A DNA stretch of 64,000 nucleotides from Macrostomum lignano (GCA_002269645.1 NIVC01000032.1:62001-126000), one strand, 5' to 3'. Shown: positions 3,695-62,649, counted from the first letter of the stretch. The notes: generated from the letters alone by a model not told the origin. Program-made: numbers and translations.

Positions 3695-5398
3695 ATGAGC
3701 CGCAAAAGCTCCAGCGACAGCTCGAGTTCGGACGCGCCTCCCGCTTCCCCAACTCCTCTCTGCATCATCTGCGACCAAGCTGCAGTCGGTGTGGCTCCGT
3801 TCTCCCGCTGCCACATGTGCAGTCAACACCTCAGTGTCGATGTGGCCAATCTATTCAAGCTCAAGGAGGAGGTCGAAGAGCTGCTGCGTGCCTACTCACA
3901 AGAGTCACAAGAGTCACAAGAGTCACAAGAGTCACAAGAGTCACAAGAGTCACAAGAGTCACAAGACTCACAAGAGTCACAAGACGCAGCAGGTGCAGCT
4001 GGCCGTGCAGCTCAGCTGCGACCAAGACAAGACGCTGAGTCGCTGCGTCGTCTCGCTCTCGACATCCAACAGCAGCTGCAAGAGGTCAATCACAAATTCG
4101 ATTTGGTACAGCAACACATCGACTCGTTTCGTAGCAGGGTGACGGGCCCGCTCTCAGGTGTGCTTGAGGCAGTGCGTGTGTGCGAGCGGGACCTCGAGGA
4201 CGTCTCCAGCTACAAGCAGGAGGTGGCCACGGCGGAGGCTGCAGGCGACATGGCGGAGCTGCTTCGCCTGGTGCAGTCCATGCACGAATCGCTTGGAGAC
4301 TTGGAGGCCGACTTTGAGAGGTCAGAGCGCCTGCTCAGAGACCAGAGCGACAATGAGGAGCTGCAGCTGCGGCTTCTGGGCCAGCTCGAGCGGCTGGTCG
4401 GCATTTGTGCGGGACGCAGTGAAGAGGGCGACTGGTCGAGAGACGCTGCGGTGACCGCGACATCCGAGGAGATAGACGCTGCTGAGAGAGAGAGAATGTT
4501 AGAGCCGATGGTCTTCAGTCACGAGGTGAAGCTGAATGGTCCTGTTACATGGCTGGCTGTGTGCAGCGACACCAGCGGATTCGTTGGTGACCGCTCAGGC
4601 CGTGTGGTTCGCATCGACTCAGCGGGAGACGGCAGCGAGGCTCTGCCTCAGCCCTACATCCTGGCATCATACTTTTCCGACAGAGACCACCTACTGGTGC
4701 TGTCTGTGGATGGCTCAAAGAAGCTGCGGTGCCACTGCGACATCGACTGGAAGATTTTCATCCGTGGCCTTCACTGCGACCGTCAGCTGCTGTTCATTGC
4801 TCAGCGTGACGCAGTGACAGTGACGGACCTAAGCGGTCGCGCGGTGCGTCGAGTCCGCCCACGCAACGAGGGCTTCGGTGACATCAGGGGAATCGGCGGC
4901 AACGCAGCCTCCGTGTTTGTGTCCAGTGGAAACAAAATTGCTGCATTCAGCAAAGCGACTTGGCAGATGGAGACGGTCATTACGCTGTCTCAGCTTCCTC
5001 ATGCTGATCTGCTTAACATGGTGACTCACAACAACTGCATTCTGGTGACGGACTGGGAGCACAAGCAGGTGCACAGAGTGCGCATCGACACCCAGCAGCT
5101 GGTCGCCTCCTTCCCGACTCAGCGTTCCGGCCTCCAACAGTTTTCTCTTCCATATGATGTGGCCGTCGACAGCAGAGGCCGCCTGTTCGTGAGTGAATGG
5201 TTGGGTCACTCAGTGCGTGCTGTGGCTGCAGACGACGGGTCGCTGCTGTGGACTCTGGGGACTCCGGGCGAGAGCGGCAGCGGAGACGACAGATTCAGGC
5301 ATCCATGCTGTCTGGCGGTGGTGACTGGAGGTCCGCGCGAGCAGCTGGTGGTGGCTGACTTGTACAACATGAGACTGCAGGTGTTCAGTGCACCCTAA
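3695..5398 (+). CDS. RING-less TRIM-NHL-like protein, copy 1 (intact): Cys/His motif, (SQE)n, coiled coil, NHL propeller
   Basis: The ATG lines up with the starts of copies 2, 4, 5 and 6. C-x2-C-x12-C-x2-C-x2-H motif, a long helical region rich in L/E/R/Q, and NHL signatures PYDVAVDSRGRLFVSE and FRHPCCLAV...VADLYNMRLQVF. Stop TAA at 5396-5398. Confidence 0.88.
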   Translation: MSRKSSSDSSSSDAPPASPTPLCIICDQAAVGVAPFSRCHMCSQHLSVDVANLFKLKEEVEELLRAYSQESQESQESQESQESQESQESQDSQESQDAAGAAGRAAQLRPRQDAESLRRLALDIQQQLQEVNHKFDLVQQHIDSFRSRVTGPLSGVLEAVRVCERDLEDVSSYKQEVATAEAAGDMAELLRLVQSMHESLGDLEADFERSERLLRDQSDNEELQLRLLGQLERLVGICAGRSEEGDWSRDAAVTATSEEIDAAERERMLEPMVFSHEVKLNGPVTWLAVCSDTSGFVGDRSGRVVRIDSAGDGSEALPQPYILASYFSDRDHLLVLSVDGSKKLRCHCDIDWKIFIRGLHCDRQLLFIAQRDAVTVTDLSGRAVRRVRPRNEGFGDIRGIGGNAASVFVSSGNKIAAFSKATWQMETVITLSQLPHADLLNMVTHNNCILVTDWEHKQVHRVRIDTQQLVASFPTQRSGLQQFSLPYDVAVDSRGRLFVSEWLGHSVRAVAADDGSLLWTLGTPGESGSGDDRFRHPCCLAVVTGGPREQLVVADLYNMRLQVFSAP

Positions 5399-6648
5399 TT
5401 GTATTCACTGGGTGAATAATACTCGAACTGTGGGGTTTCTAATTTAATTTCAGCAAAGCTCCAAAAACCCAATTTTGTGCCTGTGAATCATTTTTGGAAA
5501 TCCCAATCACCCTGTGCTCAGTGAAACTCCAGCTTTTGACACTCAAACTGCTCATTCATTTTTATCAGTCGCTCGCTTTTGCAGTTTTCTTCAAACCGCC
5601 CCCTTAGCTTGCACTCAGACTTTATTGATACAATTATGCAAAGCAACTTTGATGCTTTATCATTTTTTCTTGGATATTAATGCAGCCTCTACGCGTCATC
5701 TTTTCTGTGTCAGAACTGATGTCAAATCTGATGTGATTTCTCTTTTAACTGCCTCACCCGAATTCATAATGCTATCCAGCTGAGTGCATTGCCAGCCAAT
5801 GAAACTGCTCAAAAAAGCAGAAGCTGAAGATGCGATCCCAGTCTCACCTAATAGGAAGTAGGAAGCAGCAAGGTGCAGTGGAAATCTCAAATGCGAAAGA
5901 CTGAAAAATTCTGTAAAACCGCAGGTTAAACCAGTCGGGAATCTCCGCCCTCCCTCCCTCGCACGTGCACTAGACTTTCTCCGACCTGAGCAGACAGTCT
6001 CAGCCGAACTACTCAGAGTGAGCAGATTAACCCAGCTGATCCTAGCAAAGCACTCCCTCTCCTCCACACACCGGATCGAACCGCTGGTTCGCTCTGACAG
6101 CAGAACCTCAGAGCGAGCACAAAATATTCGGAAACTCCTGACTTGGTGTGGCTGACCTTGCACTGTACTCTCTGCTGTAAGCCAGCATCACTGATTGACA
6201 CCATCAAATACATCTGCATCATCAGGAAAATTCAGTTAAATTGTCGGCTCAGTTACTTTGGCTCCGCCACTTGGAGTAGAAGTCACAGACAGCCACTGTA
6301 GTGAGAGTCACTGACTTGAGAGACTTGAGAGCCAAGATATTGAAATATTTCCCTCGCTGCAGACTCAGCGCTCGCTTTTGAGTTCCAATTTCCTCAATGG
6401 GTCACTGCTTTGTGTTCTATATGCATGGGCACTGGTGCTTTTAGCAGGGAAACTATTGTTAAAATATGAGTGCTTTGTAAAGTAGAAATTGATGGCACAA
6501 CACAACTGAATGTTACATAACAAAACAATTCTCATGTACGTTAGTTGGTCATCCCATCCGTTAAATTTTATTTTAAAGCAGCGAAATCCCAGAATGTCTT
6601 GGGTTCAAAGTCTCACAGGTTTTTTGGTACCACGTGACACCTGCTAGA

Positions 6649-6821
6649 GACTGGGTTTCATTGTGACTGGTAATCATGGTGGGTTTCACTGTGACTGGGT
6701 TTCACTGTGACTGGGTTTCACTGTGACTGGGTTTCACTGTGACTGGGTTTCACTGTGACTGGGTTTCACTGTGACTGCAGGCTTTCACTGTGACTGGCTT
6801 TCACAGTGACTGGGTTTCACA
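6649..6821. repeat. 16-bp minisatellite (GTGACTGGGTTTCAC[T/A])n
   Basis: About 10 units. Homologous arrays occur at 26330-26876 and 34549-34744. Confidence 0.9.
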
Positions 6822-7200: not shown

Positions 7201-9370
7201 CATGCTGCATAGCGACTGCGGCATGATTGCCAATCAGACATGCTGCATAGCGACTGTGGCATGATTGCCAATCAGACATGCTGCATAGCGACTGCGGCAT
7301 GATTGCCAATCAGACATGCTGCATAGCGACTGCGGCATGATTGCCAATCAGACATGCTGCATAGCGACTGTGGCATGGTTGCCAATCACACATGCTGCAT
7401 AGCGACTGCGGCATGATTGCCAATCAGACATGCTGCATAGCGACTGCGGCATGATTGCCAATCAGACATGCTGCATAGCGACTGTGGCATGATTGCCAAT
7501 CAGACATGCTGCATAGCGACTGCGGCATGATTGCCAATCAGACATGCTGCATAGCGACTGTGGCATGATTGCCAATCAGACATGCTGCATAGCGACTGTG
7601 GCATGATTGCCAATCAGTCATGCTGCATAGCGACTGCGGCATGATTGCCAATCAGACATGCTGCATAGCAACTGTGGCATGATTGCCAATCAGACATGCT
7701 GCATAGCGACTGCGGCATGATTGCCTATCAGACATGCTGCATAGCGACTGTGGCATGATTGCCAATCACACATGCTGCATAGCGACTGTGGCATGATTGC
7801 CAATCACACATGCTGCATAGCGACTGCGGCATGATTGCCAATCAGACATGCTGCATAGCGACTGTGGCATGATTGCCAATCAGACATGCTGCATAGCGAC
7901 TGCGGCATGATTGCCAATCAGACATGCTGCATAGCGACTGCGGCATGATTGCCAATCAGACATGCTGCATAGCGACTGTGGCATGATTGCCAATCAGACA
8001 TGCTGCATAGCGACTGTGGCATGGTTGCCAATCACACATGCTGCATAGCGACTGCGGCATGATTGCCAATCAGACATGCTGCATAGCGACTGCGGCATGA
8101 TTGCCAATCAGACATGCTGCATAGCGACTGTGGCATGATTGCCAATCAGACATGCTGCATAGCGACTGCGGCATGATTGCCAATCAGACATGCTGCATAG
8201 CGACTGTGGCATGATTGCCAATCAGACATGCTGCATAGCGACTGTGGCATGATTGCCAATCAGTCATGCTGCATAGCGACTGCGGCATGATTGCCAATCA
8301 GACATGCTGCATAGCAACTGTGGCATGATTGCCAATCAGACATGCTGCATAGCGACTGCGGCATGATTGCCAATCAGACATGCTGCATAGCGACTGTGGC
8401 ATGATTGCCAATCACACATGCTGCATAGCGACTGTGGCATGATTGCCAATCACACATGCTGCATAGCGACTGTGGCATGATTGCCAATCACACATGCTGC
8501 ATAGCGACTGTGGCATGATTGCCAATCACACATGCTGCATAGCGACTGCGGCATGATTGCCAATCACACATGCTGCATAGCGACTGTGGCATGATTGCCA
8601 ATCAGACATGCTGCATAGCGACTGCGGCATGATTGCCAATCACACATGCTGCATAGCGACTGTGGCATGATTGCCAATCACACATGCTGCATAGCGACTG
8701 TGGCATGATTGCCAATCACACATGCTGCATAGCGACTGCGGCATGATTGCCAATCAGACATGCTGCATAGCGACTGCGGCATGATTGCCAATCAGACATG
8801 CTGCATAGCGACTGCGGCATGATTACCAATCAGACATGCTGCATAGCGACTGCGGCATGATTGCCAATCAGACATGCTGCATAGCGACTGTGGCATGATT
8901 GCCAATCAGACATGCTGCATAGCGACTGTGGCATGATTGCCAATCACACATGCTGCATAGCGACTGTGGCATGATTGCCAATCAGACATGCTGCATAGCG
9001 ACTGTGGCATGATTGCCAATCAGACATGCTGCATAGCGACTGTGGCATGATTGCCAATCAGACATGCTGCATAGCGACTGTGGCATGATTGCCAATCAGA
9101 CATGCTGCATAGCGACTGTGGCATGATTGCCAATCAGACATGCTGCATAGCGACTGTGGCATGATTGCCAATCAGACATGCTGCATAGCGACTGCGGCAT
9201 GATTGCCAATCAGACATGCTGCATAGCGACTGTGGCATGATTGCCAATCAGACATGCTGCATAGCGACTGCGGCATGATTGCCAATCAGACATGCTGCAT
9301 AGCGACTGCGGCATGATTGCCAATCACACATGCTGCATAGCGACTGCGGCATGATTGCCAATCAGACATG
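7201..9370. repeat. 38-bp satellite array, about 57 monomers
   Basis: Continuous tandem array of the 38-bp unit with an internal 646-bp (17-mer) higher-order duplication. Confidence 0.97.
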
Positions 9371-10376
9371 CCTCTCTGGCGGCATTTCTCGGGTTGTGCG
9401 CAATCCAATTGGCCTAGCACTCGCTAGCCCAATCCAAATTGAGTCCTCACCGGAGGTGATGTACGAGGTACTCATCTAAAAATAACCCTATTTTTCTTTC
9501 CAATTATTTCGGCCCTCGGCCTTGGTTAGGGGGGTGTACCTGGAGTGAGTTGGAATTCTGGACTGCAGTGTGGCTAGAACAGGACTTGAGCCCCCCGGTC
9601 GCACCCGCCCTGCAGGAAAGACGACCATTCACAAAAGTGTACGGTAGAGCCCATTTGATGCCAGCCCTGAGGCTGAGCCCCGGGTTTAGGGTTCAGGTGC
9701 TCCTCCCTTTAAATCTCCCAGGGCGCCTTCCAAAAATTGGATTTTTGAGCTCTGGCCTTGTCTGGTCCATCTTGCTCCTCCTTTGGGTCCATCCGCTGTC
9801 TCCTCTGGCTGTCTCCCTGCTTTTGTGTCTCGGCTCTCATCCTGACAGTGGACTGGAGTCCTGGGGAATAAGTTCGTCCCGAATCGGGGAATACCGGCTG
9901 AGTCCGACCCCTTGGCCTTGACCCCAAAGTAGAGCTGGGTAGTGAAAAAGCCTTGAGGCTGGCAGCCCTATAGGAGGTTTTACAGTGGCCTACCTGACAG
10001 GAGGCTCGCCCTTGGTTAATAAGCTGCCCAGACTCGCTCCAAAATTAAGCTATTTCCGTAGACTTCCCGCTCTCAGACCGCTTTCAATAATTTTCCAATC
10101 TTTTTTCGCGCACTCCCGGGATTTGTCTGCTGGGTGGTGGCTTGGGTGGACTCGGTCTTAGCACCGTCCCTGATTCCACTTTGGGTTGGCGGTGTCTCAG
10201 TCCATAGGTTTGGGTTAGCAGCCCAATAGTTTACCAGGCCTTGAGACCTGGTACCAATCGTGGCCTCTCGGGCTATATGCCCCTTATAGTATGGCCCACA
10301 GTTAGATCCAGCGGCAGAGCCCTACTTGGGCTGATCCGCGGGGGCACCTGGCTTCCCACCCTCGTTTAACAACAAC

Positions 10377-10765
10377 AATCCACTGCTTATCCTTTTCTGC
10401 AATCCACTGCTTATCCTTTTCTGTAATCCACTGCTTATCCTTTTCTGCAATCCACTGCTTATCCTTTTCTGCAATCCACTGCTTATCCTTTTCTGCAATC
10501 CACTGCTTATCCTTTTCTGCAATCCACTGCTTATCCTTTTCTGTAATCCACTGCTAATCCTTTTCTGCAATCCACTGCTTATCCTTTTCTGCAATCCACT
10601 GCTAATCCTTTTCTGTAATCCACAGCTTATCCTTTTCTGCAATCAACTGCTAATCCTTTTCTGCAATCCACTGCTTATCCTTTTCTGCAATCCACTGCTT
10701 ATCCTTTTCTGCAATCCACTGCTTATCCTTTTCTGCAATCCACTGCTTATCCTTATCTGTAATCC
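10377..10765. repeat. 24-bp minisatellite (AATCCACTGCTTATCCTTTTCTGC)n
   Basis: About 16 units; source of the LQKRISSG ORF on the minus strand. Confidence 0.95.
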
Positions 10766-11260
10766 GTTGCTAGATTGTTCTGAAGTGCCAGAAATATGGC
10801 AAACTCAACAGGCTTGCAGCACACCGAAATGATGTCCTTGCAGCCACTTTGGAACGTGCGGTTGGCATTTTGATGCAGTGAGTTCGAATGAACCCGGAGA
10901 TTCTCTCTGAGTTATGCATCCGCTCCAATATACAGTTCACTTCTTCCTCCGAGTGAGTCACCTTTCAAACTTCCTTTGTTCATCAATAACGAGTAGACAA
11001 CAATATCGTTTGATAACGAGCTGAGATCGCAAAGTGAAACTACTCTTGTACCTTGGCATCTCTTGGGTTGGAGTTCACAGAATTTTAAATTTGACTCAGC
11101 TCATCCTCAAGAGTCCTGCAGGGTTGCTTCGGCCACCTCACAGCAGCTCGGTGCTCACCTAAACTTCGTCAGAGTCCTCGTCGCCTTTTTCGTTAAGAGC
11201 GCCATGTCGAGATTAAAAGTCTGGAACCACAGTTAGACCATAGACTGTACGTTCTCTTTA

Positions 11261-12612
11261 TAGTGTTCACAGTGTCTATAGTGAGTCTTGATAGTGTTCA
11301 CAGTGTCGATAGTGAGTCTTGATAGTGTTCACAGTGTCGATAGTGAGTCTTGATAGTGTTCACAGTGTCTATAGTGAGTCTTGATAGTGTTCACAGTGAC
11401 TACAGTGAGTCTTGATAGTGTTCACAGTGACTACAGTGAGTCTTGATAGTGTTCACAGTGACTATAGTGAGTCTTGATAGTGTTCACAGTGACTACAGTG
11501 AGTCTTGATAGTGTTCACAGTGACTATAGTGAGTCTTGATAGTGTTCACAGTGACTACAGTGAGTCTTGATAGTGTTCACAGTGTCTATAGTGAATCTTG
11601 ACAGTGTTCACAGTGTCTATAGTGAGTCTGGATAGTGTTCACAGTGTCTATAGTGAGTCTTGATAGTGTTCACAGTGACTATAGTGAGTCTTGATAGTGT
11701 TCACAGTGTCTATAGTGAGTCTTGATAGTGTTCACAGTGACTATAGTGAGTCTTGACAGTGTTCACAGTGTCCATAGTGAGTCTTGACACTGTTCACAGT
11801 GGCTATAGTGAGTCTTGATAGTGTTCACAGTGACTACAGTGAGTCTTGATAGTGTTCACAGTGTCTATAGTGAGTCTTGATAGTGTTCACAGTGTCTATA
11901 GTGAGTCTTGATAGTGTTCACAGTGACTATAGTGAGTCTTGATAGTGTTCACAGTGTCTATAGTGAGTCTTGATAGTGTTCACAGTGGCTATAGTGAGTC
12001 TTGATAGTGTTCACAGTGTCTATAGTGACTCTTGATAGTGTTCACAGTGTCTATAGTGAGTCTTGACAGTGTTCACAGTGACTATAGTGAGTCTTGATAG
12101 TGTTCACAGTGACTATAGTGAGTCTTGATAGTGTTCACAGTGTCTATAGTGAGTCTTGATAGTGTTCACAGTGACTATAGTGAGTCTTGATAGTGTTCAC
12201 AGTGTCGATAGTGAGTCTCGATAGTGTTCACAGTGTCTATAGTGAGTCTTGATAGTGTTCACAGTGTCTATAGTGAGTCTTGATAGTGTTCACAGTGTCG
12301 ATAGTGAGTCTTGATAGTGTTCACAGTGTCTATAGTGAGTCTTGATAGTGTTCACAGTGACTACAGTGAGTCTTGATAGTGTTCACAGTGTCTATAGTGA
12401 GTCTTGATAGTGTTCACAGTTTCTATAGTGAGTCTTGACAGCGTTCACAGTGTCTATAGTGAGTCTTGATAGTGTTCACAGTGGCTATAGTGAGTCTTGA
12501 TAGTGTTCACAGTGACTATAGTGAGTCTTGATAGTGTTCACAGTGTCTATAGTGAGTCTTGATAGTGTTCACAGTGGCTATAGTGAGTCTTGATAGTGTT
12601 CACAGTGACTAG
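11261..12612. repeat. 31-bp satellite (GATAGTGTTCACAGTGTCTATAGTGAGTCTT)n
   Basis: About 43 tandem units with point variants, ending about 800 bp upstream of the copy 2 ATG. Confidence 0.97.
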
Positions 12613-13401: not shown

Positions 13402-13848
13402 CTCATCACAGACTATCCAACAATGAGCCGCAGAAGCTCCAGCGACAGCTCGAGTTCGGACGCGCCTCCCGCTTCCCCAACTCCTCTCTGCATCATCTGC
13501 GACCAAGCTGCAGTCCGTGTGGCTCCGTTCTCCCGCTGCCACATGTGCAGTCAACACCTCAGTGTCGATGTGGCCAATCTATTTGAGGCAGCGCTGGATT
13601 CTACCGCTGTACTTATGACTAAGTGACTAGCTGATTGACTATTGAAATATTGACTGTACATCCAGTGTACCCACCACCCCGATTTCGTACCCCGTGCGCC
13701 CCGCCACCCCAATGCGTTAATAATTATATATTGAGCTTCGTTTGTGTTAGCATCGTTTATGATTAATATATCGAGACTGAGACATCGTTTATTTATAATA
13801 CCAAATCATCGTGTTGCTCAGTTGAAGTCTTAATTAAACGACGCGACA

Positions 13849-16800
13849 ATGGCGTCGCAAGCAGAAAGGCAGAGTCATGAACTCAATTTGGACGACGCCG
13901 ACATGGCCGAAGCATGGATGCAGCGACTCTCAGCCACAGCGCGCATCAAAAAGCTAACAGACTCGGATGAGGCTCGGGACAAAACTGACCTATTCTTATC
14001 TAAGGCCGGCCTTCAGGCAATTCGCACGCTATCCCTAATGGCAGCACCAAAAAAACTTGATGAGATGAAATTCGATGACATCAAAAAGCTAGTTGACGAG
14101 ACGATCCGGCCGAAAAAGTCACTTGTAATTGCCGAACGCACCAGGTTCCTCAGCTTGAAGCAGGAATCGAGTGAGACCGTCATAGCCTACTACCGGAGGC
14201 TGAGGGCTGCTACGTCACACTGCGAGTTTGAAAAGCTGGGCAGCAAGCAGACAAAGGAGGACGACATGATTACCATGCGACTAATTGACGGCCTCAACTC
14301 CTCAGAGCACAAAAAAAGAATCTTGGAGCGCCTACAAAACGAAGATGGAGAAACGCCACTCGACAGGATTTTGCAGAATTTGCAGCAGCTTGAGCAGATC
14401 CGTGACTACAACACGCCGGCTCCTGCTGACATCGCCTTCGCCGGTCAACAGAGGGGAGTCTCCTCACCTGCCAAGCCGCAGCCGTCAATCAAATGCGGGT
14501 TCTGCGGCGCCAATCACCTGAGGGGCAACTGCCCAGCCTACGGCAAAAAATGCTCCAAGTGCCAAAAAAGAAATCACTTTGCGGCTGTCTGCAGATCACG
14601 AGCTGTCCATCAGGAAATCGCAGTCGATGCAGAAGAAGCAGACGTGTATACTCTTAGCCCCAACAGAGCTAAAGCGGGCCTCTTCAAGACCATCAAAATC
14701 AACGGCCAGGGTATCTCAATGCAAGTCGACACTGGAACTGAGATCAGTCTGATTCCGCAGAACCTCTGGCGCCAGCTGGGCCGGCCCAACCTGCGCAAGT
14801 GCAGGAGAATTCTCCGGCAGTTCGACGGCTCCAGCATCGCCTGCCTCGGGGAATTCACTGCGTCACTCGAGACCAACTCGAAATTCGTCACGATTGACCT
14901 GGTTGTCACCGCCGCGGAGAAGAAGCACGGTCTGCTTGGCATGGACAACATAAAGCTCCAAGAAGACGCGGTCACCATCAACGCGGTCCAACAGCTCGGA
15001 TGCCTCAAAGGGTTCAAAGCTAAGATTAGACTGGTGGAAGGAGCCAAAGCGTTCTATTGTGCTGCCCGGTCCGTGCCGCTACACCTCAGAGACTTGGTGG
15101 TGCGCGAGCTGCAAAGAATGGAATCCGAGGGTATCATTGAGGCGGTCCCTCCCGGAGGCAGCCAGTGGGCATCGCCTATTGTCAACGTGCTCAAGCCAAA
15201 TGGAAAGGTTCGTGTCTGTGCCGATTTTAAAGCTGGTGTCAATCACCAGATATGCAATGACACCTACCCGATCCCGGAGATGGAGACGATTTTTTCTGAG
15301 ATAGCAGGCATGTCGCACTTTTCTAAACTGGATCTCTCTGATGCTTACCTGCAAATCGAACTCGATGAAGATAGCCGAGAGGTGACGACAATCGCGACAC
15401 CTTTGGGTCTCTTCCGCTACAAAAGGCTGGTTCCCGGGCTGAAATCTGCATCGGCCATTTTCCAGAAAGCCATGGAAACAATCCTACAGGATGTCAGCAA
15501 CAAGATTGTCTACCAGGATGACGTCCTCCTGGGAGCGAAGTCCAACGCCGAATTAAGGAGCAAAGTGCAGCACGTTCTCCAGACGATGCGAACTGCTGGA
15601 ATGACGATCAACCTAGAAAAGTCTAATCTAAGCGCAACGGAGGTCAGATTCCTCGGCTACAGCATCAGCGCGAGCGGGATCACCCCGGACCCCAATCTGG
15701 TCGGAAAAATTCGCTCAGTGAACTCGCCGAAGGACAGAAAGCAGCTCGAATCGTTTCTAGGACTTTCCAACTTCTTCGGGAGGTTTATTAAGAATTACTC
15801 TGACGTCATAGAACCGCTCAATCAACTCCGGGGCCGAAACGTTGAGTTCGTCTGGGGCCCAGCCCAGGAAGCTGCCTTCACGCGAATCAAGGATCTGCTG
15901 TGCAGCGAGCCTGTAATCAAGCCGTATGACAAGCACAAAGAGACCACGCTCACTACCGATGCTAGCGAGAAAGCCATCGGAGCGATCCTCTCGCAGGGCA
16001 ACCACCCGATCATGTACTTCAGCCGGAAACTGAGCAGTGCAGAAGCAGGGTATTCAAACATCGAGAGAGAGGCGCTGGCGATCGTTTGGGCTATGGAGCG
16101 TGCGAAACAGTTTCTATTAGGGTCGCGCTTCACACTCAGAACGGATCATCGCCCGCTGGAATTCATCTTCGGGTCGAGGCGCCAGCTGCCGAAGGTTGCC
16201 AATGCGAGACTTCTCCGATGGGCAATCGAACTGATGGCCTTTGACTATGACATCGTCTACACTAAAGGCGAATCGATTCCGCAAGTAGATGCACTTTCGC
16301 GGCTGGATTTTGAAGGTGACAGCGACACCGAGCTGACAGAGCGGCCGGAAAGCATCATTCACTGGACTGGCGAGGCTGTGATCCCGTGGCAGGAGCTGAA
16401 ATCAGAGACCCAAAGGGACCGACTGCTGCTTGATGTCATGAAACGCGTTGCTGTCAACAGATGGTCAAACTGCTCGCCAGCCGAACGACCTTTCAAGGCC
16501 ATCCGACACGCCCTCACGACCGACGACGGAGTTCTCTGCTACGGTGATCGCCCAGTCATCCCGGCTGTCCTCCTACAAGGCGTTCTTGGAATTGTGCACG
16601 ATACGCATCAGGGATCTGGCTCAACGCGCGCTCGCCTACAGAACTCAGCCTGGTGGCCCGGCTATTGCAGCGACGTCGAGGCCTACGTTCGAGGTTGCCC
16701 GACCTGCTCAAGACTGCGCCCGAGTGGTCTGGAGAGTGTCCACAGGTGGCCCGACGAGGAAAAGCCGTGGCACAGGGTCCACATGGATCATGCGTGTGTG

Positions 16801-17373
16801 CCGAGGGTCGGACTCCTGCTCATTCTAGTTGACGCTATGTCCGGCTGGCCCGAGGCTGTACGAGTGCAAAACAGGGACGCGGCGACAGTCAAGCGGGTGT
16901 TGCAGACAATCTTTGCTAGGAACGGCGTGCCTCATGTGCTGGTCAGCGACAACGCCGCCGAGTTCCACGACGCCAATCTGATTGCCTGGCTGGAAAGAAT
17001 CGGCTGCCGCGCCATCAAGACTCCCCCGCGACACCCTCAGTCTAACGGCTTGGCCGAGCGGATGGTCCAGTCTATCAAGAGAGCATCTGCGGCGTGGGAC
17101 CAGTCCGAAAGCTACGAGTCGTTCCTGTCCAGGGTACTCCTAAACTACAGGTGTGTGCCGCATGCTGGGCGCCAGCAGAGCCCGTCACAGCTCATGGGTC
17201 GACAACTACGCAACCCGATAACCATGCGCACACCAATCGGAGCGAGCCTGTGGTACACGCCTGGTGATCAGCAGCGTCAGGAGCGAGCTGAGTTCGTCGT
17301 GCAGAAGGGAACCAACACCGCCCTAATCGCTCGTCAAGGCGGTCGCATCGCCCTGGCGCAACGGATCAGCTGA
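13849..17373 (+). CDS. Gag-Pol polyprotein (Gag with double CCHC, protease, RT, RNase H, integrase)
   Basis: CGFCGANH...CPAYGKKCSKCQKRNHFAAVC; VDTG; YQDD; TTDAS; HQG..CPTC; VHMD..SDN..SNGLAER. The domain order is Gypsy. A probable 1-nt loss near 17360 truncates the integrase tail. Confidence 0.95.
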   Translation: MASQAERQSHELNLDDADMAEAWMQRLSATARIKKLTDSDEARDKTDLFLSKAGLQAIRTLSLMAAPKKLDEMKFDDIKKLVDETIRPKKSLVIAERTRFLSLKQESSETVIAYYRRLRAATSHCEFEKLGSKQTKEDDMITMRLIDGLNSSEHKKRILERLQNEDGETPLDRILQNLQQLEQIRDYNTPAPADIAFAGQQRGVSSPAKPQPSIKCGFCGANHLRGNCPAYGKKCSKCQKRNHFAAVCRSRAVHQEIAVDAEEADVYTLSPNRAKAGLFKTIKINGQGISMQVDTGTEISLIPQNLWRQLGRPNLRKCRRILRQFDGSSIACLGEFTASLETNSKFVTIDLVVTAAEKKHGLLGMDNIKLQEDAVTINAVQQLGCLKGFKAKIRLVEGAKAFYCAARSVPLHLRDLVVRELQRMESEGIIEAVPPGGSQWASPIVNVLKPNGKVRVCADFKAGVNHQICNDTYPIPEMETIFSEIAGMSHFSKLDLSDAYLQIELDEDSREVTTIATPLGLFRYKRLVPGLKSASAIFQKAMETILQDVSNKIVYQDDVLLGAKSNAELRSKVQHVLQTMRTAGMTINLEKSNLSATEVRFLGYSISASGITPDPNLVGKIRSVNSPKDRKQLESFLGLSNFFGRFIKNYSDVIEPLNQLRGRNVEFVWGPAQEAAFTRIKDLLCSEPVIKPYDKHKETTLTTDASEKAIGAILSQGNHPIMYFSRKLSSAEAGYSNIEREALAIVWAMERAKQFLLGSRFTLRTDHRPLEFIFGSRRQLPKVANARLLRWAIELMAFDYDIVYTKGESIPQVDALSRLDFEGDSDTELTERPESIIHWTGEAVIPWQELKSETQRDRLLLDVMKRVAVNRWSNCSPAERPFKAIRHALTTDDGVLCYGDRPVIPAVLLQGVLGIVHDTHQGSGSTRARLQNSAWWPGYCSDVEAYVRGCPTCSRLRPSGLESVHRWPDEEKPWHRVHMDHACVPRVGLLLILVDAMSGWPEAVRVQNRDAATVKRVLQTIFARNGVPHVLVSDNAAEFHDANLIAWLERIGCRAIKTPPRHPQSNGLAERMVQSIKRASAAWDQSESYESFLSRVLLNYRCVPHAGRQQSPSQLMGRQLRNPITMRTPIGASLWYTPGDQQRQERAEFVVQKGTNTALIARQGGRIALAQRIS

Positions 17374-17429
17374 GACGCGTTGTAGAAGACCAGGTACAGC
17401 CAAACCGATTCGGCCGGAGCCTACCTATC

Positions 17430-19947: not shown

Positions 19948-20091
19948 CTCTCACTCCATATCTCACTCTCAATCTGTGTGACTCTCACTCCATATCTCAC
20001 TCTCAATCTGTGTGACTCTCACTCCATATCTCACTCTCAATCTGTGTGACTGTCGCTCCATATCTCACTCTCAATCTGTCTCACTCTCACC
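19948..20091. repeat. 34-bp pyrimidine-rich minisatellite, about 4 copies
   Basis: CTCTCACTCCATATCTCACTCTCAATCTGTGTGA starting at 19948, 19982, 20016 and 20050. Confidence 0.9.
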
Positions 20092-49096: not shown

Positions 49097-52000
49097 TGTA
49101 GTGTACGCTCTGCGCGGTAATAATGTACAGCTGGCTTGGTCGATGAATTCCTAGAAATATTGATATTACGCAATACTCTCGTGCCTATAAATATAGTGAA
49201 TTGAGCAGTCGGCTCAGTTAAGTGCAATCATAGCGCACCCGAAGATATTACGTCAGTCTGCAAAGAGCGAGTTATAGTTAAACCCTATAGTTCACTCTCA
49301 CCTTGGCCTCTTGGGGGTGTGGTCGCAGCGCAATTGGAGAGGTCGCGGGTTCGCTCCCTGCAGCTTGTAGGATCGGAGGTGCGGGCTCCCCGACAGGAAA
49401 ATCAGGCTCAGTATCCGGCGCTACTCGCTTCAGGTCGGTGCAGTGTCGCCTGCAAACTCTGGCGCCCTGCCGAATGGTCATCGAGTCGCCCTTGACCTTC
49501 TCGACCAGCCAGGGTGCCCACTCGAACGGAGTCTCGCCCTTGAGCGGATTTAGTCGGCGCCGCAGCACTGTGTCACCGACTTTGAGACCGTGCGGTCTCG
49601 CCTGCCGTTGCTTGTCGGTGTAGCGCTTGCCCTTTGCCTTGCTGCTGGCGTCCTGCTGTCGGAGCCTCCTGTCCACGATGGCCACTGGTCTCGACGGCTT
49701 GACTGACGGGATGGCGTCGTTTGGGACGCGCCCCATAAAAAGCTCGGCTGGTGCCCGGTTGGTGGTTCGCTGCGGCGTGCAACGGTAGGCCAGCAGCCAC
49801 TCGTCAAGGGCTGCCCTCCAGTCGCTCTTCTGGGCAATGGCAGCTCGTACAACCTTATTGATGGAGCGGTTCAGGCGCTCGGTGATGCCGTTGGCCTGCG
49901 GATGCAGCGGTGTGATGAGACGCTGCCGGATTCCGTAGCTGTCCAGAAAGACTTTGAACTGGGCCGAGGAGAACGGCGGGCCGTTATCTGTGACCAGTAC
50001 CTGTGGGATGCCGAATCTGGCGAACGAATTCCTCAGCTTGGGAATCAGCGCTTCGGCCGTTGTGGTCTGGACGATCTCGACCTCAGGGAAGCGCGAGTAA
50101 TGGTCGACGCAGACGAGCAGCATGTTGCCTTGAATGGGGCCCAGCAGGTCTGCCCCTAGCGTTAGCCATGCAGCTTTCAGGATTGGCGTCGGCTTCAGCG
50201 GCGCCGCGGTCGCGTCGGCTTCAGCGGCGCCGCGGTCGCGTCGGCTTCAGCGGCGCCGCGGTCACGTCGGCCGCGTGCGACGTTGCTGCACAGGCTCGGC
50301 ACGCACGCACAAAGAGCTCCGCTTCTGTCTGCATCCTCGGCCACCAGACTTTGGTGTTCAAACGGTCAACCGTCTTGCGCATGCACTGATGACCACGGTG
50401 TGCCAGGTCCAACACCAGGCGCCGAAGCGCCGTTGGAACTACGATCCGCTGGTCCCGCAGGAGCAGGCCGTCCGCTGCCGATAGCTCGTCCCGTAGGGCG
50501 TGAAGCGATCGCATCTCCGCCGACTCGAGGCTCCATCGTCCTGTCTCCAGCGATCGAATAGCGGCTTGAATTGTTGCATCTTGCAGCGAACTCTCTTGCA
50601 CTAAGGACAGCGACAGAGCGTTCGGTATGGCCGCCTGGACAGTTGCTGCGATGCAGAGGGTGTCGAGCTCCTCGCCGACATTTCTTCCTCGTGTTGGCAG
50701 CGGCTGCTGGCTCAGCACATCCGCTGGGTTTAGTGGGCTGGTATTCGACTGTGAATTTCATGTTCTGAATGCGCAGCGCCATTCTTTCGATCCTCGGGGA
50801 GGCCTTGAGCGACTGCTGAACAATGCGATGAGCGGCTTGTGGTCCGTCACCACCGTAAATGTCGGGGCGCCGTGGAGGTAGTACTGAAATTTCAAACAGC
50901 CGTATTTGACTGCCGGCGCCTCCTTCTCAGTCTGGGAGTAGCGCTGCTCGACACCGGACAGCGTCCGGCTGGCGTACGCAACGGGCCGGTTGGTGCCGTC
51001 CGCTTGTGTCTGCGTTAGAATCGCGCCCAGGCCCGCTGGGCCGGCGTCGACGATGAGTTGCGTCGCTAGGCGGTGGTTAAAGGAGGCGAGGGTGCCGCTG
51101 GTCGCAATCAGGGTCTTGACGTCATCAAAAGCTCGTTTCTTGAGGTCGGTCCATGCCCAGGGCTCGCCTTTTCTAGTCAGATTGCGCAGCGGCTTCGCTA
51201 CGTCCGCCAGCCCGGGGGTGAATGAGGCCAGATAGTTTACCAGGCCTAGAAACGAGCGCACCTCTGTGACGGTCTTTGGCTCGGCGAATGCGTGGATGGC
51301 CTCCAGCTTGGACTGGGTTGGTCTGACCCCTTCACGAGACAGTCGCATCCCCATGAACGTGACCTCGGTACGGGCGAGCTTGCATTTTAACGGATTTAGC
51401 GTCAGCCCGTGCTGCGCCAGTCGTCGAAGACATGCCTGCAGGTTGCTGTGGTGCTCCGCCACGCTGTGCCCATACACGATGATGTCGTCGTGAATCCATT
51501 TTACTTTCGGAAGTCCAGCTAGCACGGATGACATGACCGCCTGGAGAATTTCCTGGGCCGTAGACAGTCCCATACAGAGCCGTGTCAGCCGCCGCAGGCC
51601 TCGTGGCGTCGAGAAAGTCAGAAGATGGCGGCATTCGTCGGCGACTGGGATTTGATAAAATGCCTTCGTGATGTCGAGCTCTGAGAATAGCTGCGCCCCT
51701 GCCATGTCTCCCGTCACCTCCTCGAATGTCGGGATGGGATGCCGCTCTCTAATGACCGACTTGTTCAGGTCTCTCAAGTCTTGCGTAATCCTGATCTCGC
51801 CCGGAGTCTGCTTGGGCACGACGACGATGCGAGCTACCCACTGACAGGGGCCTTCAACCGGCTTTGGTCCTCGAGGCACTGCAGCTCGGCGTCGACTGCC
51901 TGTGCGAGATGTATTGGCACCCTTGATGGGGGATGACCGACCGGCCTGGCTCCCTCTTCCAGGAAGATGCGGGCGGAATAGTTTTTGAGCCTGCCGATTC

Positions 52001-53587
52001 CGCTGAAGACTTGTGCGTTCTCCGTTAGGAGTTCGTCCAGGGCCGGTGCCCCTGGCGCATGTAGGACTTCCTTTGGGATCCCTGCTAGCATGCTGTCTAG
52101 CGAGACCTCAGGAGACGGACGCAGCTGGCATGCCACCTTGTTCTCTGGACCGACTCGCAGAATCTGAAGTCTTTCAGCGCTTCTCCGGCCAATGATGCAA
52201 GCGCCCTCACCGTCGAGCACCAAGAACGGTAGTGTCTCGTGGATCTCGAACACGCTGACTTGCAGGTCTGCCTTGCCCAGCAGTCTCAGTGGCTCTTGGC
52301 TTCCGTACGGGTAGACCTTGTCGCTGGCAGGCTGCAGCGCGGCTTTTTGCGGCATCCTGTCGTAGGCTGCCCTGTCGGTGATGTTGCAGGCCGCGCCGCT
52401 GTCGATGAGCACATTTGTCTTGAGCCCGTTAATGGCCGCAGGCGTCCAAGCTGAGCCGCAGTTCCGCAGGGGGAATAGCTCGTGCTCTAGGGGGTCGTCC
52501 TGCAGATATTCGACTCGACCCGGCGGAGCGCCCTCCTGCGGTTCGTCAACGGTCCTCAGAGGGACTTTAGCTGCTCCTCGACACGCCCGAGCGAAATGAC
52601 CCATCTTTCCGCAGCGTCGACACGCTTTGTTACGGGCTGCCTCGCACGTCCGATGTCCTGGCCGCCCGCAGCGATCGCAGTTAATGCCGCTGTCTCTTGC
52701 CGCGGCAGCCGGCCTGGGTGAATGCGACGGTCGGTTACGAGGTGGGCGCAGCGCCGCCACATTTGAAGCGGCAGGATGGCCCGTGTCGGCTGCGGTGCCG
52801 ATCTCAATGGCCTGGGCCTGCTGCTCCGCTGCCTCCCTCGCTCGGATTCGCTTCATAACGTCGTCCAAGGAGACATCGTTGAGCTGCAGGAGTTCCCTCC
52901 TGATCCTCTCGGACCGGTAATGAGCCACGATCTTGTCCCTGATGAGCGAGTCTCGGAGTTCGCCGGATGTGCATTGGTCCGCAGCCTTGCGTAGCCGACG
53001 GTACCAGGCCTCAATTGACTCTCCTTCTTCCTGACGGCAGATTTCAAATTGGTACCTGAGGAAGACAACGCTGTTCTTTTGGTCGAAGATTCCCTGCAAC
53101 TCTTTGATGAGCTCCTCCGCGGACTCTCCTTTCTCCACGCCGTTATCGTCCATAAGTCTTCAACCTTCTCGCCCGCTGTGTAAACTAAGAGTTCGAGCTG
53201 CTGTGTCGCATCTGAGATGCCGGCTGCGCGTATGTGGCTGTTGAACCTTCGCGTCCAGGTTTTCCATCGCTGAGCTCTTGTCAGAGGATCGCCTTCGAGG
53301 TCAAAGACGTCTGGTGCCGCGAGTTGCAGGGCCTGTGCCATATTTGCTGAATCACCGGTCGATATCAGTGTGCGGGGGGTGGGCCTCACTGAGAGTTTGC
53401 TTGCGACGCCATGTAATGACTCAGACTAGCTATTTAGTTTTGGCGAGAGAAAAACGATGCACTTAACTGAGCCGACTGCTCAATTCAGTATATTTATAGG
53501 CACGAGAGTATTGCGTAATATCAATATTGCTACGAATTCATCGACCAAGCCAGCTGTACATTATTACCGCGCAGAGCGTACATTACA
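49097..53587 (-). mobile_element. Ty3/Gypsy (Mag-like) element with inverted terminal repeats instead of a direct 3' LTR
   Basis: 176-bp 5' LTR at 53587-53412 (TGTAATG...CATTACA) and PBS at 53411-53398. Fragmented gag-PR-RT-RH-IN runs to a stop at 49278. 49097-49226 is the reverse complement of 53458-53587 (4 mismatches in 130). TSD GAGTG on both sides. Confidence 0.9.
49278..53341 (-). pseudogene. Frameshifted gag-pol of the second Gypsy element
   Basis: Motifs CDRCGRPGH..CRRCGKMGHFARAC, LIDSG, IHDD, IVDAG, HRGHQ..CRAC, CVDHY..TDNG..ANGITER. Breaks near 53155, 51870, 50780 and at a 26-bp triplication (50191-50268). Confidence 0.9.
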
Positions 53588-54127: not shown

Positions 54128-55837
54128 ATGAGCCTTGAAGACACCAGTGACAGCTCGAGTTCGGACACGCCTCCCGCTACCCCAACTCCTCTCTGCATCA
54201 TCTGCGACCAAGCTGCAGTCGGTGTGGCTCCGTTCTCCCGCTGCCACATGTGCAGTCAACACCTCAGTGTCGATGTGGCCAATCTATTCAAGCTCAAGGA
54301 GGAGGTCGAAGAGCTGCTGCGTGCCTACTCAAAAGACTCACAAGAGTCACAAGACTCACAAGAGTCACAAGACTCACAAGAGTCACAAGACTCACAAGAG
54401 TCACAAGACTCACAAGAGTCACAAGGCGCAGCAGTTTCAGCTGGCCGTGCAGCGCTGCTGCGACCAAGACAAGACGCTGAGTCGCTGCGTCGTCTCGCTC
54501 TCGACATCCAACAGCAGCTGCAAGAGGTCAATCACAAATTCGATTTGGTACAGCAACACATCGACTCGTTTCGTAGCAGGGTGACGGGCCAGCTCTCAGG
54601 TGTGCTTGAGGCAGTGCGTGTGTGCGAGCGGGACCTCGAGGACGTCTCCAGCTACAAGCAGGAGGTGGCCACGGCGGAGGCTGCAGGCGACATTGCGGAG
54701 CTGCTTCGCCTGGTGCAGTCCATGCACGAATCGCTTGGAGACTTGGAGGCCGACTTTGAGAGGTCAGAGCGCCTGCTCAGAGACCAGAGCGACAATGAGG
54801 AGCTGCAGGTGCGGCTTCTGGGCCAGCTCGAGCGGCTGGTCGGCATTTGTGCGGGACGGAGTGAAGAGGGCGACTGGTCGAGAGACGCTGCGGTGACCGC
54901 GACGTCCGAGGAGATTGACGCTGCTGAGAGACTTCTGTTCGATCCGATGGTCTTCAGTCACGAGGTGAAGCTGGATGGCGATGTTAAATGGCTGGCTGTG
55001 TGCAGCGACACCAGCGGATTCGTTGGTGACCGCTCAGGCCGAGTGGTTCCCGCCGACTCAGCGGGAGACGGCAGCGAGGCTCTGCCTCAACCCTGCATCC
55101 TGGTATCATACTTTTCCGATAGAGACCATCTACTGGTGCTGTCTGTGGACGGCTCACAAAAGCTGCGGTGCCACTGCGACATCGACTGGAATAAGGACAT
55201 TTTTGGCCTTCACTGCGACGGTCAGCTACTGTTCATTGCTCAGCCTGACGCAGTGACAGTGACGGACCTGAGCGGTCGCGCGGTTCGTCGACTCAGCCCA
55301 CAAATTCGGGGTTTCTGTGGTATCTTGGGAATCGGTGGCAACGCAGCCACCGTGTTTGTGCCCAGCGGAAACAAAATTGTTGCATTCAGCAAAGCGACTT
55401 GGCAGATGGAGACGGTCATCACGCTGTCTCAACTTCCTGATGCACGACTGCACAACCTGGCGACTCACGACAACTGCATTCTGGTGACGGACTGGATGCA
55501 CAATCAGGTGCACAGAGTGCGCATCGACACCCAGCAGCTGGTCGCCTCCTTCCCGACTCAGCGTTCCAGCCTCCAACAGTCTGCTCATCCAATTGATGTT
55601 GCCGTCGACAGCAGAGGCCGCCTGTTCGTGAGTGAATTTTCGGGTCACTCAGTGAGATCGGTGGCTGCAGACGACGGGTCGCTGCTGTGGACTCTGGGGA
55701 CTCCGGGCGAGAGCGGCAGCGGAGACGGCAGATTCAGGGGTCCATGGGGTCTGGCGGTGGTGACGGGAGGTCCGCGCGACCAGCTGGTGGTGGCTGACAG
55801 TTTTAATAGCAGACTGCAGGTGTTCAGTGCATCGTAA
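54128..55837 (+). CDS. TRIM-NHL-like protein, copy 5 (intact)
   Basis: 569-aa open frame MSLEDTSDSSSS...RLQVFSAS*. Confidence 0.9.
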   Translation: MSLEDTSDSSSSDTPPATPTPLCIICDQAAVGVAPFSRCHMCSQHLSVDVANLFKLKEEVEELLRAYSKDSQESQDSQESQDSQESQDSQESQDSQESQGAAVSAGRAALLRPRQDAESLRRLALDIQQQLQEVNHKFDLVQQHIDSFRSRVTGQLSGVLEAVRVCERDLEDVSSYKQEVATAEAAGDIAELLRLVQSMHESLGDLEADFERSERLLRDQSDNEELQVRLLGQLERLVGICAGRSEEGDWSRDAAVTATSEEIDAAERLLFDPMVFSHEVKLDGDVKWLAVCSDTSGFVGDRSGRVVPADSAGDGSEALPQPCILVSYFSDRDHLLVLSVDGSQKLRCHCDIDWNKDIFGLHCDGQLLFIAQPDAVTVTDLSGRAVRRLSPQIRGFCGILGIGGNAATVFVPSGNKIVAFSKATWQMETVITLSQLPDARLHNLATHDNCILVTDWMHNQVHRVRIDTQQLVASFPTQRSSLQQSAHPIDVAVDSRGRLFVSEFSGHSVRSVAADDGSLLWTLGTPGESGSGDGRFRGPWGLAVVTGGPRDQLVVADSFNSRLQVFSAS

Positions 55838-60672: not shown

Positions 60673-60969
60673 TGCAATAGTTCAGACTCTGCTAAAAGAA
60701 GCGATCTTCCAGTCTAAGCCAAGAAGTAAACGAATTCGCTCTGCATTCAGCAAGTGCACAGCTGCATCAAATAACGCAGTTGCTTTGCGCCCTCTGAAGC
60801 AGGCAGATGCGAACTCTGGACCGTGAACAGTCACCTGCCCTCTGCCAATGTAAACTGTGCGTCCCCACCCATGCTGCAGCTGCCGCTCGTCTACTTAAAA
60901 GGCAGCCTTGTGCGAATCAACAGTTGTCGTTTTACAACGAAATAAAATTGAAGGACCTGCGGTGCTGCA

Positions 60970-62649
60970 ATGAGCATTGAAGATTCCAGCGACAGCTCGA
61001 GTTCGGACGCGCCTCCCGCTACCCCAACTCCTCTTTGCATCATCTGCGACCAAGCTGCAGTCGGTGTGGCTCCGTTCTCCCGCTGCCGCATGTGCAGTCA
61101 ACACCTCAGTGTCGATGTGGCCAATCTATTCAAGCTCAAGGAGGAGGTCGAAGAGCTGCTGCGTGCCTACTCAAAAGACTCACAAGACTCACAAGACTCA
61201 CAAGGTGCAGCAGGTGCAGCCAGCCGTGCAGCGCTGATGCGACCAAGACAAGACGCTGAGTCGCTGCGTCGTCTCGCTCTCGACATCCAACAGCAGCTGC
61301 AAGAGGTCAATCACAAATTCGATTTGGTACAGCAACACATCGACTCGTTTCGTAGCAGGGTGACGGGCCAGCTCTCAGGTGTGCTTGAGGCAGTGCGTGT
61401 GTGCGAGCGGGACCTCGAGGACGTCTCCAGCTACAAGTAGGAGGTGGCCACGTCGGAGACTGCAGGCGACATGGCGGAGCTGCTTCGCCTGGTCCAGTCC
61501 ATGCACGAATCGCTTGGAGACTTGGAGGCCGACTTTGAGAGGTCAGAGCGCCTGCTCAGAGAACAGAGGGACAATGAGGAGCTGCAGCTGCGGCTTCTGG
61601 GCCAGCTCGAGCGGCTGGTTGGCATTTGTGCGGGACGCAGTGAAGAGGGCGACTGGTCGAGAGACGCTGCGGTGACCGCGAGGCCGGATTTGAGAGACGC
61701 TGCGGTGACTGCGACATCTGAGGAGATAGACGCTGCTGAGAGAGAGAATGTTGGAGCCGATGGTCTTTAGTCACGAGGTGGATCTGGATGCCCCTGTTCA
61801 ATGGCTGGCTGTGTGCAGCGACACCAGCGGATTCGTTGGTGACCGCTCAGGCCGAGTGGTTCCCGCCGACTCAGCGAGAGGCGGCAGCGAGACTCTGCCT
61901 CAGCCCTGCATCCTGGCATCATTTCATCGCAATAGTAACAAAGACCACCTACTGATGCTGTCTGTGGACGGCTCACAGAAGCTGCGATGCCACTGCGACA
62001 TCGACTGGAATAAGAATATTCCAGGCCTTCACTGCGACCGTCAGCTGCTGTTCATTGCTCAGCATGACGTAGTGACAGCGACGGACTTGAGCGGTCGCAA
62101 GGTGCATCGAATTTACCGCCCACACATCGAGGGCTTCGGTGACATCAGTGGAATCGGTGGCAACGCAGCCTCCGTGTTTGTGTCCAGTGAAAACAAAATT
62201 GCTGCATTCAGCAAAGCGACTTGGCAGATGGAGACGGTCATCACGCTGTCTCAGCTTCCTTTTGCTTATTTAAACAACCTGGCGACTCACGACAACTGCA
62301 TTCTGGTGATAGCAGGGAGCGCGATAAGGTGCACAGAGTGCGCATCGACACCCAGCAGCTGGTCGCCTCCTTCCCGACTCAGCGTTCCGGCCTCCAACAG
62401 TTTGCCTTTTCAGAGGATGTGGCCGTCGACAGCAGAGGCCGCCTGTTCGTGAGTGAAAATGGTGGTCACTCAGTGCGAGCGGTGGCTGCAGACGACGGTT
62501 CGCTGCTGTGGACTCTGGGCGGGAGAGTCAGCAGAGACGGCAGATTTTGGCATCCATGGGGTCTGGCGGTGGTGACGGGATGTCCGCGCGAGCAGCTGCT
62601 GGTGGCTGACTGTTACAACAACAGACTACAGGTGTTCAGTGCATCCTAA
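60970..62649 (+). pseudogene. TRIM-NHL-like copy 6 (nonsense and frameshift mutations)
   Basis: CAG>TAG at 61438-61440, a 33-bp in-frame duplication near 61660-61715, a (GA)5 frameshift at 61738-61747, a second frameshift near 62310-62330, and a 9-bp deletion near 62520. Confidence 0.92.

Follow-up and report, generated by a model that had tools for sequence, protein, structure and literature searches.

Exchange between paralogues and variable propeller loops in a tandem NHL gene family of the flatworm Macrostomum lignano

The MHC class I/II genes, the KIR genes and the plant NLR clusters evolve by birth and death, with conversion between loci and with diversifying selection. In Podospora anserina, the NLR-like proteins of the HNWD family, het-d and het-e among them, carry hypervariable WD40 propellers, whose surfaces are under positive selection and whose repeats evolve in concert, both inside a locus and from one locus to another (PMC1805685, PMC2873952). 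The fish families finTRIM/ftr, btr and trim35/hltr and the primate genes TRIM5/TRIM22 vary in the loops of the B30.2 domain (PMC3137616). Here we describe a stretch of 64,000 nucleotides from Macrostomum lignano (GCA_002269645.1, NIVC01000032.1:62001-126000), referred to below as the window, which contains six same-strand (+), intronless paralogues of one gene encoding a TRIM-NHL-like protein with a C-terminal NHL beta-propeller. Analysis of these copies and of further members of the family revealed that real exchange of sequence has taken place between the paralogues and that no single tree fits them. The variation among them is concentrated in short patches, which were assigned by structure modelling to loops on one face of the propeller.

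In its logic, the closest analogue of this family is the Podospora HNWD family. In both cases there is a paralogous family with a propeller as the (here putative) recognition module, a few surface positions under diversifying selection, concerted evolution of the rest, exchange between loci, and pseudogenes. However, Podospora swaps whole WD repeats, the repeat number varies, and repeat-induced point mutation may contribute, whereas the present genes, which belong to an animal, have an NHL propeller of fixed layout, tracts that do not follow the repeat units, and a zinc-knuckle and putative coiled coil instead of NACHT/HET. As regards architecture and genomics, the family comes nearest to finTRIM, btr and hltr of fish and to TRIM5 of primates. 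The fish families are likewise lineage-specific tandem expansions with a TRIM-type architecture, a conserved N-terminal and (here putative) coiled-coil part and hypervariable, positively selected loops at the C-terminus, and recombination was considered in their analyses too; in the fish and primate proteins, however, the variable domain is B30.2 (PRY/SPRY) and the RING is kept, whereas here the variable domain is NHL. The domain order zinc module, putative coiled coil and NHL is that of the TRIM-NHL proteins (Brat, Mei-P26, LIN-41/TRIM71, TRIM2/3/32, Thin and NHL-2), which also gave the best sequence and fold matches. Unlike the canonical TRIM-NHL genes, which are single-copy, slowly evolving developmental regulators, the present family has at least 18 copies that differ precisely on the top face, and neither a RING nor a Pfam B-box was matched. 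With the MHC, KIR and NLR genes it has in common the tandem arrays, the pseudogenes, the patchwork sharing of motifs, a rate of non-synonymous substitution (dN) exceeding that of synonymous substitution (dS) at ligand-contact positions (here, predicted surface positions) and raised silent diversity beside the selected codons; it differs from them in its fold and in being presumably intracellular, no signal peptide having been found in the family proteins. Exchange between paralogues, homogenisation of the coding sequence and a non-synonymous excess on a predicted binding surface, as found here, are features of families that combine concerted evolution with diversifying selection.

The six copies, recognised from the list of open reading frames (ORFs) and by self-comparison of the window, were numbered c1 to c6; all coordinates below refer to the window. 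Four copies are intact and encode proteins of 542-569 aa: c1 (3695-5398, 567 aa, starting with MSRKSS, with its NHL propeller at about 4496-5395 according to the ORF list, the Pfam NHL match and the alignment), c3 (31349-33043, 564 aa), c4 (41296-42924, 542 aa) and c5 (54128-55837, 569 aa), the last of which was chosen for the structure models. The other two are pseudogenes. The 5' fragment of c2 (13423-13583, +), which is 98.8% identical to positions 3695-3855 of c1, contains the first 54 or so codons and is followed by a retrotransposon insertion; the remainder (18004-19609, +) has a 2-nt deletion after 18696, and its NHL part is still open as a 302-aa ORF at 18701-19609. Copy c6 (60970-62649, +) has a premature TAG at 61438, several in-frame indels, and frameshifts due to a 2-nt deletion after 61743 and a 1-nt deletion after 62312. 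We took 12 more copies from 6 loci of GCA_002269645.1, with arrays on two contigs; nine of them have open frames and three are pseudogenes, and their designations begin with L. The larger analyses used 17 family members, made up of window copies and these retrieved copies. The family is star-like: identity is about 96% in the coiled coil and about 88.6% in the NHL domain for nearly every pair.

The original prediction, made from the window sequence, described c3 and c5 as identical over 263 nt and listed ten short protein motifs shared by different pairs of copies; every one of these specific statements turned out to be correct. The tract at 32775-33037 in c3 and 55569-55831 in c5 (both +) is identical at 263 of 263 nt. 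It covers four hypervariable patches and stops 6 nt before the end of the ORF, and the identity breaks off exactly at both ends, with 33 mismatches in 440 nt (7.5%) upstream and 14 in 62 nt (about 23%) downstream. The shared motifs are NKDIF and PQIRGF in c3 and c5, GDGSEA and SYFSDR in c1 and c5, TDWMHNQ and LFDPMV in c4 and c5, KIFI and FSLPYD in c1 and c2, KPLPQPCIFASF in c2 and c3, and TDWEHKQ in c1 and c3.

Recombination among the copies was evident from the site patterns as well. The six copies have 89 informative sites, and 46% of the site pairs are incompatible (46-48% over the analyses). Adjacent sites agree far better with one another than shuffled ones do: the pairwise homoplasy index (PHI) of the six copies gave a z of about -7, and none of 5000 shuffles was as low as the observed value; for the 17 copies z was -8 to -9 (p<=0.0005). 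When only 71 framework sites were used, the test was still significant (z=-3.3, p<=0.0005), which argues against mere convergence at selected codons. The run shared by c3 and c5 extends over 54 polymorphic sites, compared with a maximum of 33 in 5000 permutations; by the same procedure the c1-c2 run was borderline and the remaining pairs of the six copies were not significant. Neighbour-joining trees of adjacent segments conflict with each other, c2 being grouped with c3 in the segment P1-P4 (bootstrap 96%), c3 with c5 (98%) and c1 with c2 (96%) in P5-P7, and c3 with c5 (100%) in P10-P14. Given these conflicting, highly supported groupings and the PHI results, one tree for all segments does not hold.

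Four tracts were globally significant, namely c3-c5 (261 nt), c3-L005a (121 nt), L003a-L003b (216 nt) and L003f-L003g (217 nt perfect, or 765 nt with 5 mismatches). The proven tracts, of 121-765 nt, are of ordinary length for ectopic conversion. At the level of patches, the splits lying at least 3 nt from all non-members formed 16 pairs that are incompatible, and at least 4 recombination events are required. A likelihood copying model, compared with permuted site order, won clearly for c3, c5, c6, L003c, L003f, L003g and L006b and had nominal support for c1, L002a and L005a. The different grouping of the copies from patch to patch is in part a real signal, but much of it would be expected from noise alone in a star-like family in which a few codons have changed recurrently; only about half of the 17 copies show a mosaic that beats permutation.

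Most of the variation falls into some dozen patches, each 10-50 nt long, within a near-invariant framework. In c1 the patches span 4529-5371 (+) and lie at 4529-4549, 4625-4643, 4651-4690, 4753-4765, 4841-4888, 5000-5023, 5049-5066, 5138-5155, 5198-5207, 5296-5309 and 5360-5371, and every copy has homologues of them. Among the 17 copies each patch has 14-17 distinct haplotypes; therefore, sharing is the exception and most of the diversity is private to one copy. In the AlphaFold2 (AF2) model the variable positions occupy alternate loops, d-a (before strand a) and b-c, in the five blades with an unambiguous assignment. By definition, the b-c and d-a loops make up an NHL propeller's top surface, which in Brat is the RNA-binding face (PMC4015489). 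Since the patches are located in the loops that form this surface in the model, they are plausibly determinants of specificity, as had been suggested from the sequence.

To compare the classes of positions, codons were partitioned by structure alone. The dN/dS ratio was 1.19 in the top loops (dN 0.22), 0.50 in the bottom loops (dN 0.038) and 0.53 in the strands. For the 28 most variable codons the ratio was 2.2, a value biased upward since these codons were picked for their variability. The hypervariable positions are richer in basic residues (24% vs 10%) and in aromatic residues (15% vs 6%).

The coding sequences are far more alike than the DNA around them. The 5' flanks fall into unrelated, non-homologous classes right up to the ATG, and a joint alignment of them was abandoned as meaningless for this reason. 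The diversity of the 3' untranslated region (3'UTR) is 0.17-0.26, whereas that of four-fold sites is 0.030 before the NHL domain (N-terminal part and coiled coil) and 0.065 within it (p=0.007 for the difference). The coding sequence is therefore homogenised relative to its surroundings, and least so near the patches. This pattern is expected if conversion homogenises the copies while selection protects diversity at particular codons; alternatively, it could arise if the patch alleles were older than the framework.

The explanation that we consider probable is that the family evolves by birth and death, that its paralogues undergo conversion or unequal crossing-over with each other, and that the loops of the top surface are under diversifying selection. 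On this account the window holds one portion of a tandem array, and the family is young and confined to Macrostomum; its birth and death are visible in the tandem duplications, the inserted transposon, the frameshifts and an array structure that differs between haplotypes or assemblies. Copies would repeatedly swap sequence in the germline by ectopic homologous recombination, that is, by gene conversion or unequal crossing-over. Such exchanges would keep the coding sequence, above all its 5' half and the framework of beta-strands, far more alike than the flanks, and the occasional transfer of blocks containing one to several loop patches would create mosaics. Diversifying selection on the top-surface loops would both create and maintain differences at these sites and so keep the patches variable while the framework is homogenised. 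We infer further that conversion predominates over crossing-over; the selection is presumably driven by the diversity or evolution of a ligand, either RNA or protein, that is bound by the top surface, and the events would be confined to the germline.

Several observations weigh against this explanation or restrict it. Seven of the 17 copies have no significant mosaic under the likelihood copying model, and PHI is no longer significant once thinning has left no two sites closer than 12 nt; therefore, much of the local signal lies within patches, which limits claims on tracts of intermediate length. Silent divergence is also raised in the top loops (dS 0.185, vs 0.075-0.098 elsewhere in the partition), so that selection is probably not the whole story, and four-fold sites adjoining variable codons have a diversity of 0.10. 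The contrast between patches and framework may accordingly owe something not only to positive selection but also to old patch alleles, to multi-nucleotide mutation or to artefacts of the way in which substitutions were counted. Moreover, conversion and unequal crossing-over are indistinguishable from one haplotype, and the c3-c5 tract is perfect with razor-sharp edges, as mis-polishing can give.

The last point bears on the assembly. If reads of one paralogue had been used to build or correct another, false identical tracts and chimeras would result; the array is rich in repeats and transposons, and look-ups aimed at ruling out chimeras found no record of the exact c4 and c5 proteins in other public assemblies. 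On the other hand, the frames of four copies are open across all junctions, the same kind of tracts occurs between other copies in GCA_002269645.1, and the signal is spread over many copies and framework sites. Chimeras are for these reasons unlikely as a general explanation. In addition, the end of the c3-c5 tract coincides with the drop in homology close to the stop codon, which would be expected of a real conversion tract, and on balance we regard an assembly or polishing artefact as improbable. Another reading is a rapid burst with a star tree and little or no exchange of single patches, in which most sharings would be ancestral or convergent at a few selected codons and a few long tracts would be real. 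The pairwise distances are indeed star-like, and even among pairs of informative sites separated by 1-3 nt, 35% are incompatible, a sign of much recurrent change (homoplasy). Painting of the Li-Stephens type gave counts of nearest-neighbour switches no lower than those in permuted columns and was thus uninformative, the patch-only sharings of 15-60 nt are not individually significant, the thinned PHI fails as mentioned above, and variants like WEHKQ can be built from states found separately in other copies. Such a burst, however, does not account for several shared patches that are complex and yet agree in every nucleotide, for example the 19-nt patch P3, which is identical in c1 and c5 and up to 13 nt different from other copies, and the P1 that c4 has in common with L002a, from which every other copy differs by 7 nt or more. 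It is also at odds with the significant framework-only PHI, and it leaves unexplained why silent sites of the coding sequence diverge 3-8 times less than the 3'UTR and why the 5' flanks are non-homologous. We think this reading rather unlikely, though it deserves more credit than an artefact.

The original prediction went further than exchange as such: it proposed short-tract gene conversion that recombines specificity cassettes combinatorially, reminiscent of avian immunoglobulin (Ig) or trypanosome variant surface glycoprotein (VSG) genes. Exchange between paralogues is borne out by PHI, the four tracts and the minimum of four events. The qualifier 'short-tract' is not, given that the significant tracts measure 121-765 nt, that none of the sharings of 15-60 nt reaches significance individually and that the PHI signal was lost on thinning. 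A dedicated, high-rate and possibly somatic system that copies loop cassettes by short-tract conversion to diversify receptors within individuals would indeed find mosaic patch sharing, pseudogenes (c2 and c6) that have patches in common with intact copies and could thus act as donors, and a framework between the patches conserved enough for homologous pairing. In mosaic segments, conserved framework and variable patches the family does resemble the systems with programmed conversion, such as chicken Ig pseudo-V genes, trypanosome VSG, Neisseria pilE/pilS and Borrelia vlsE. In those systems, however, there is one expression site, the donors are silent and as a rule truncated, transfer runs in one direction, and the change takes place inside an individual or clone, whereas the organisation here is different, with six full-length copies that have their own start codons and differing 5' flanks and with no layout of expression site and silent donors. 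A search of the window by tblastn and blastn for an archive of donor cassettes found, outside the six copies, one orphan family fragment (20096-20162, +), corresponding to about 62 nt of the last NHL blade. The 14-17 haplotypes per patch do not represent a small set of reused cassettes, which speaks against the combinatorial claim. Furthermore, the common segments carry later mismatches (5 differences between c1 and c5 in the 49-nt P4, and 5 in 765 nt between L003f and L003g), pointing to old germline events on an evolutionary time scale, and comparable mosaics are fixed among the reference copies of GCA_002269645.1. The analogy with Ig and VSG genes is thus not sustained, and a dedicated system of this kind appears very improbable. 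We therefore retain birth and death with ectopic exchange and diversifying selection as the probable explanation.

The architecture of the proteins comprises an N-terminal CxxC...CHxC zinc-knuckle, which is B-box-like, about 200 residues of long helices, and the NHL beta-propeller, which makes up the last 300 residues. Pfam NHL was matched with 33.2 bits, against a gathering cutoff of 20, and phmmer against the PDB gave Thin at 7.7e-22, TRIM71 at about 1e-18 to 1e-19, and TRIM71, TRIM3 and TRIM2 within the range 1e-19 to 1e-12. The AF2 model of the NHL domain had a predicted local distance difference test score (pLDDT) of 88.5, and its top Foldseek matches were the NHL domains of Thin, TRIM2, TRIM3 and TRIM71, with template modelling (TM) scores of 0.72-0.78. 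The 302-residue NHL domain of c5 (54929-55834) has about 27 beta-strands in the model, and it is also matched by WD40 proteins with seven blades (TM about 0.63); the propeller may accordingly have either six blades, as in canonical NHL domains, or seven. In the full-length AF2 model, computed as a monomer, helices were placed at residues 43-85, 104-186, 189-220 and 224-246 with pLDDT 50-70, and the region between the zinc module and the NHL domain may form a coiled coil.

At the N-terminus, Pfam found no match to zf-B_box. The motif CxxC-x11-CHxC-x2-H folds as small hairpins in the full-length model, residues C23, C26 and C42 are invariant over the wider superfamily, and UniProt labels the M. 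lignano homologues 'B box-type domain-containing'. No RING was matched by Pfam either, and there are just about 22 residues ahead of the zinc-knuckle; 'RING-type' is the name given to some more distant M. lignano relatives. Brat likewise has no RING, and the proteins are thus, like Brat, built in the manner of TRIM-NHL proteins from which the RING is missing. All close protein relatives, which are 80-85% identical, come from M. lignano, and an exhaustive profile search confined the family to M. lignano and a few short metagenome contigs. The same search revealed a wider M. lignano superfamily of 500-580-aa relatives with 26-35% identity.

Comparison with the other contigs of GCA_002269645.1 provided information on the structure of the array. 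Positions 19962-31152 of the window are collinear with NIVC01001900.1 and 97-100% identical to it, whereas the neighbouring gene differs despite the common intergenic DNA: c2 and L005a are 90.5% identical in the NHL domain (comparison of the window with the loci L005/L002 on NIVC01001900.1), and the gene body of c3 has no counterpart on NIVC01001900.1. Because the gene bodies beside common flanks differ, the structure of the array varies between haplotypes, subgenomes or assemblies. Because of these flanks we considered c2 and L005a as an orthologous pair for timing the conversions. They are not simple orthologues, however: immediately 3' of the gene, at 19666-19960, the homology is broken, and on the 5' side the flanks have nothing in common, so the pair was rejected. 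The pseudogenes L003b and L003e (10200-11725 and 34754-36278 of locus L003) are 99.7-100% identical, as if about 24 kb of the array had undergone segmental duplication very recently.

Some further features of the copies were noted. An identical 2-nt deletion is present in both pseudogenes of the window, in a (GA)n run where the coiled coil joins the NHL domain (after 18696 in c2 and after 61743 in c6); it represents either recurrent slippage or a lesion copied by conversion. Directly 5' of c1 and c3, and in frame with them, an 18-nt tandem repeat coding for (PPDLSL)n is found at 3441-3666 and 31080-31314. The ORFs are lengthened by about 100 codons through this repeat and begin at 3368 for c1 and 31055 for c3; the repeat also precedes the M. 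lignano copy L003c. Between the zinc-knuckle and the coiled coil there is a 9-nt coding microsatellite, (SQE/SQD)n, at 3896-3984, 18049-18190, 54329-54425 and homologous sites, whose copy number among the paralogues ranges from about 1 (c4) to about 20 (c2). About 20 nt before the ATG of c2 (near 13400), L001a, L002a, L003d, L003f and L005a there is a polypyrimidine tract with TTTCAG, which resembles a splice acceptor; judged by its sequence, it could serve a 5'UTR intron or spliced-leader trans-splicing. In the remaining copies the 5' flanks are unrelated to it. Retroposition as the origin of the intronless copies was rejected, since the copies are tandem and on the same strand, their 3' homology continues past the poly(A) signals, and c1 and c3 have 1.5 kb of 3' flank in common.

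The window is sparse in ORFs, and transposons and satellites are abundant, a composition typical of eukaryotic DNA. The element inside c2 (13584-18003, +) is a long terminal repeat (LTR) retrotransposon of the Ty3/gypsy type encoding protease, reverse transcriptase (RT), RNase H and integrase. Its 265-nt LTRs (13584-13848 and 17739-18003) are 100% identical, it is bounded by a 5-bp target duplication (CTATT), and its gag-pol ORF of 1174 aa is uninterrupted; therefore, the insertion is very recent, and such an intact element is possibly still active. A second, degraded LTR-type element at 49278-53153 (-) has a gag zinc knuckle, RT/RNase H and integrase on separate ORFs, and an ORF resembling those of long interspersed nuclear elements (LINEs), with RT and RNase H, lies between gene copies at 44429-46297 (+). 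A 38-nt satellite, in arrays of up to 57 units, occupies 7201-9371 and also 1-168, 35937-36244, 43751-44122 and 46517-46937; it recurs between gene copies, including those of the M. lignano reference loci. Further satellites have units of 31 nt (11255-12611), 25 nt (385-973), 19 nt (27621-28125) and 20 nt (30259-30551). The satellite arrays could promote unequal crossing-over.

The mechanism proposed here is not new, being that of MHC, KIR, plant NLR and HNWD genes; the possible novelty is the NHL scaffold. Our literature search found neither a hypervariable NHL family nor an account of this Macrostomum family, so that the scaffold may be new while the process is of a known kind. In a much bolder version, which we hold to be very improbable, the family would be a germline repertoire of intracellular receptors diversified on the RNA-binding face of the NHL domain, for example against viral or transposon RNAs or in reproductive conflict, with conversion between paralogues, pseudogene donors included, generating new combinations of surfaces; in its boldest form, individuals would also acquire new mosaics at a measurable rate, whether somatically or in the germ line over one generation. 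Setting that version aside, the TRIM-NHL proteins of other animals are regulators of RNA that evolve slowly and are encoded by single-copy genes, whereas the recent copies found here, 18 or more in number, have diverged almost exclusively on the face corresponding to the RNA-binding one of Brat. If this surface binds RNA or protein targets here, the family would be a candidate for a diversified recognition system in a regenerating model flatworm that is tractable in the laboratory, and it would also serve as a natural experiment on the encoding of specificity by the NHL surface.

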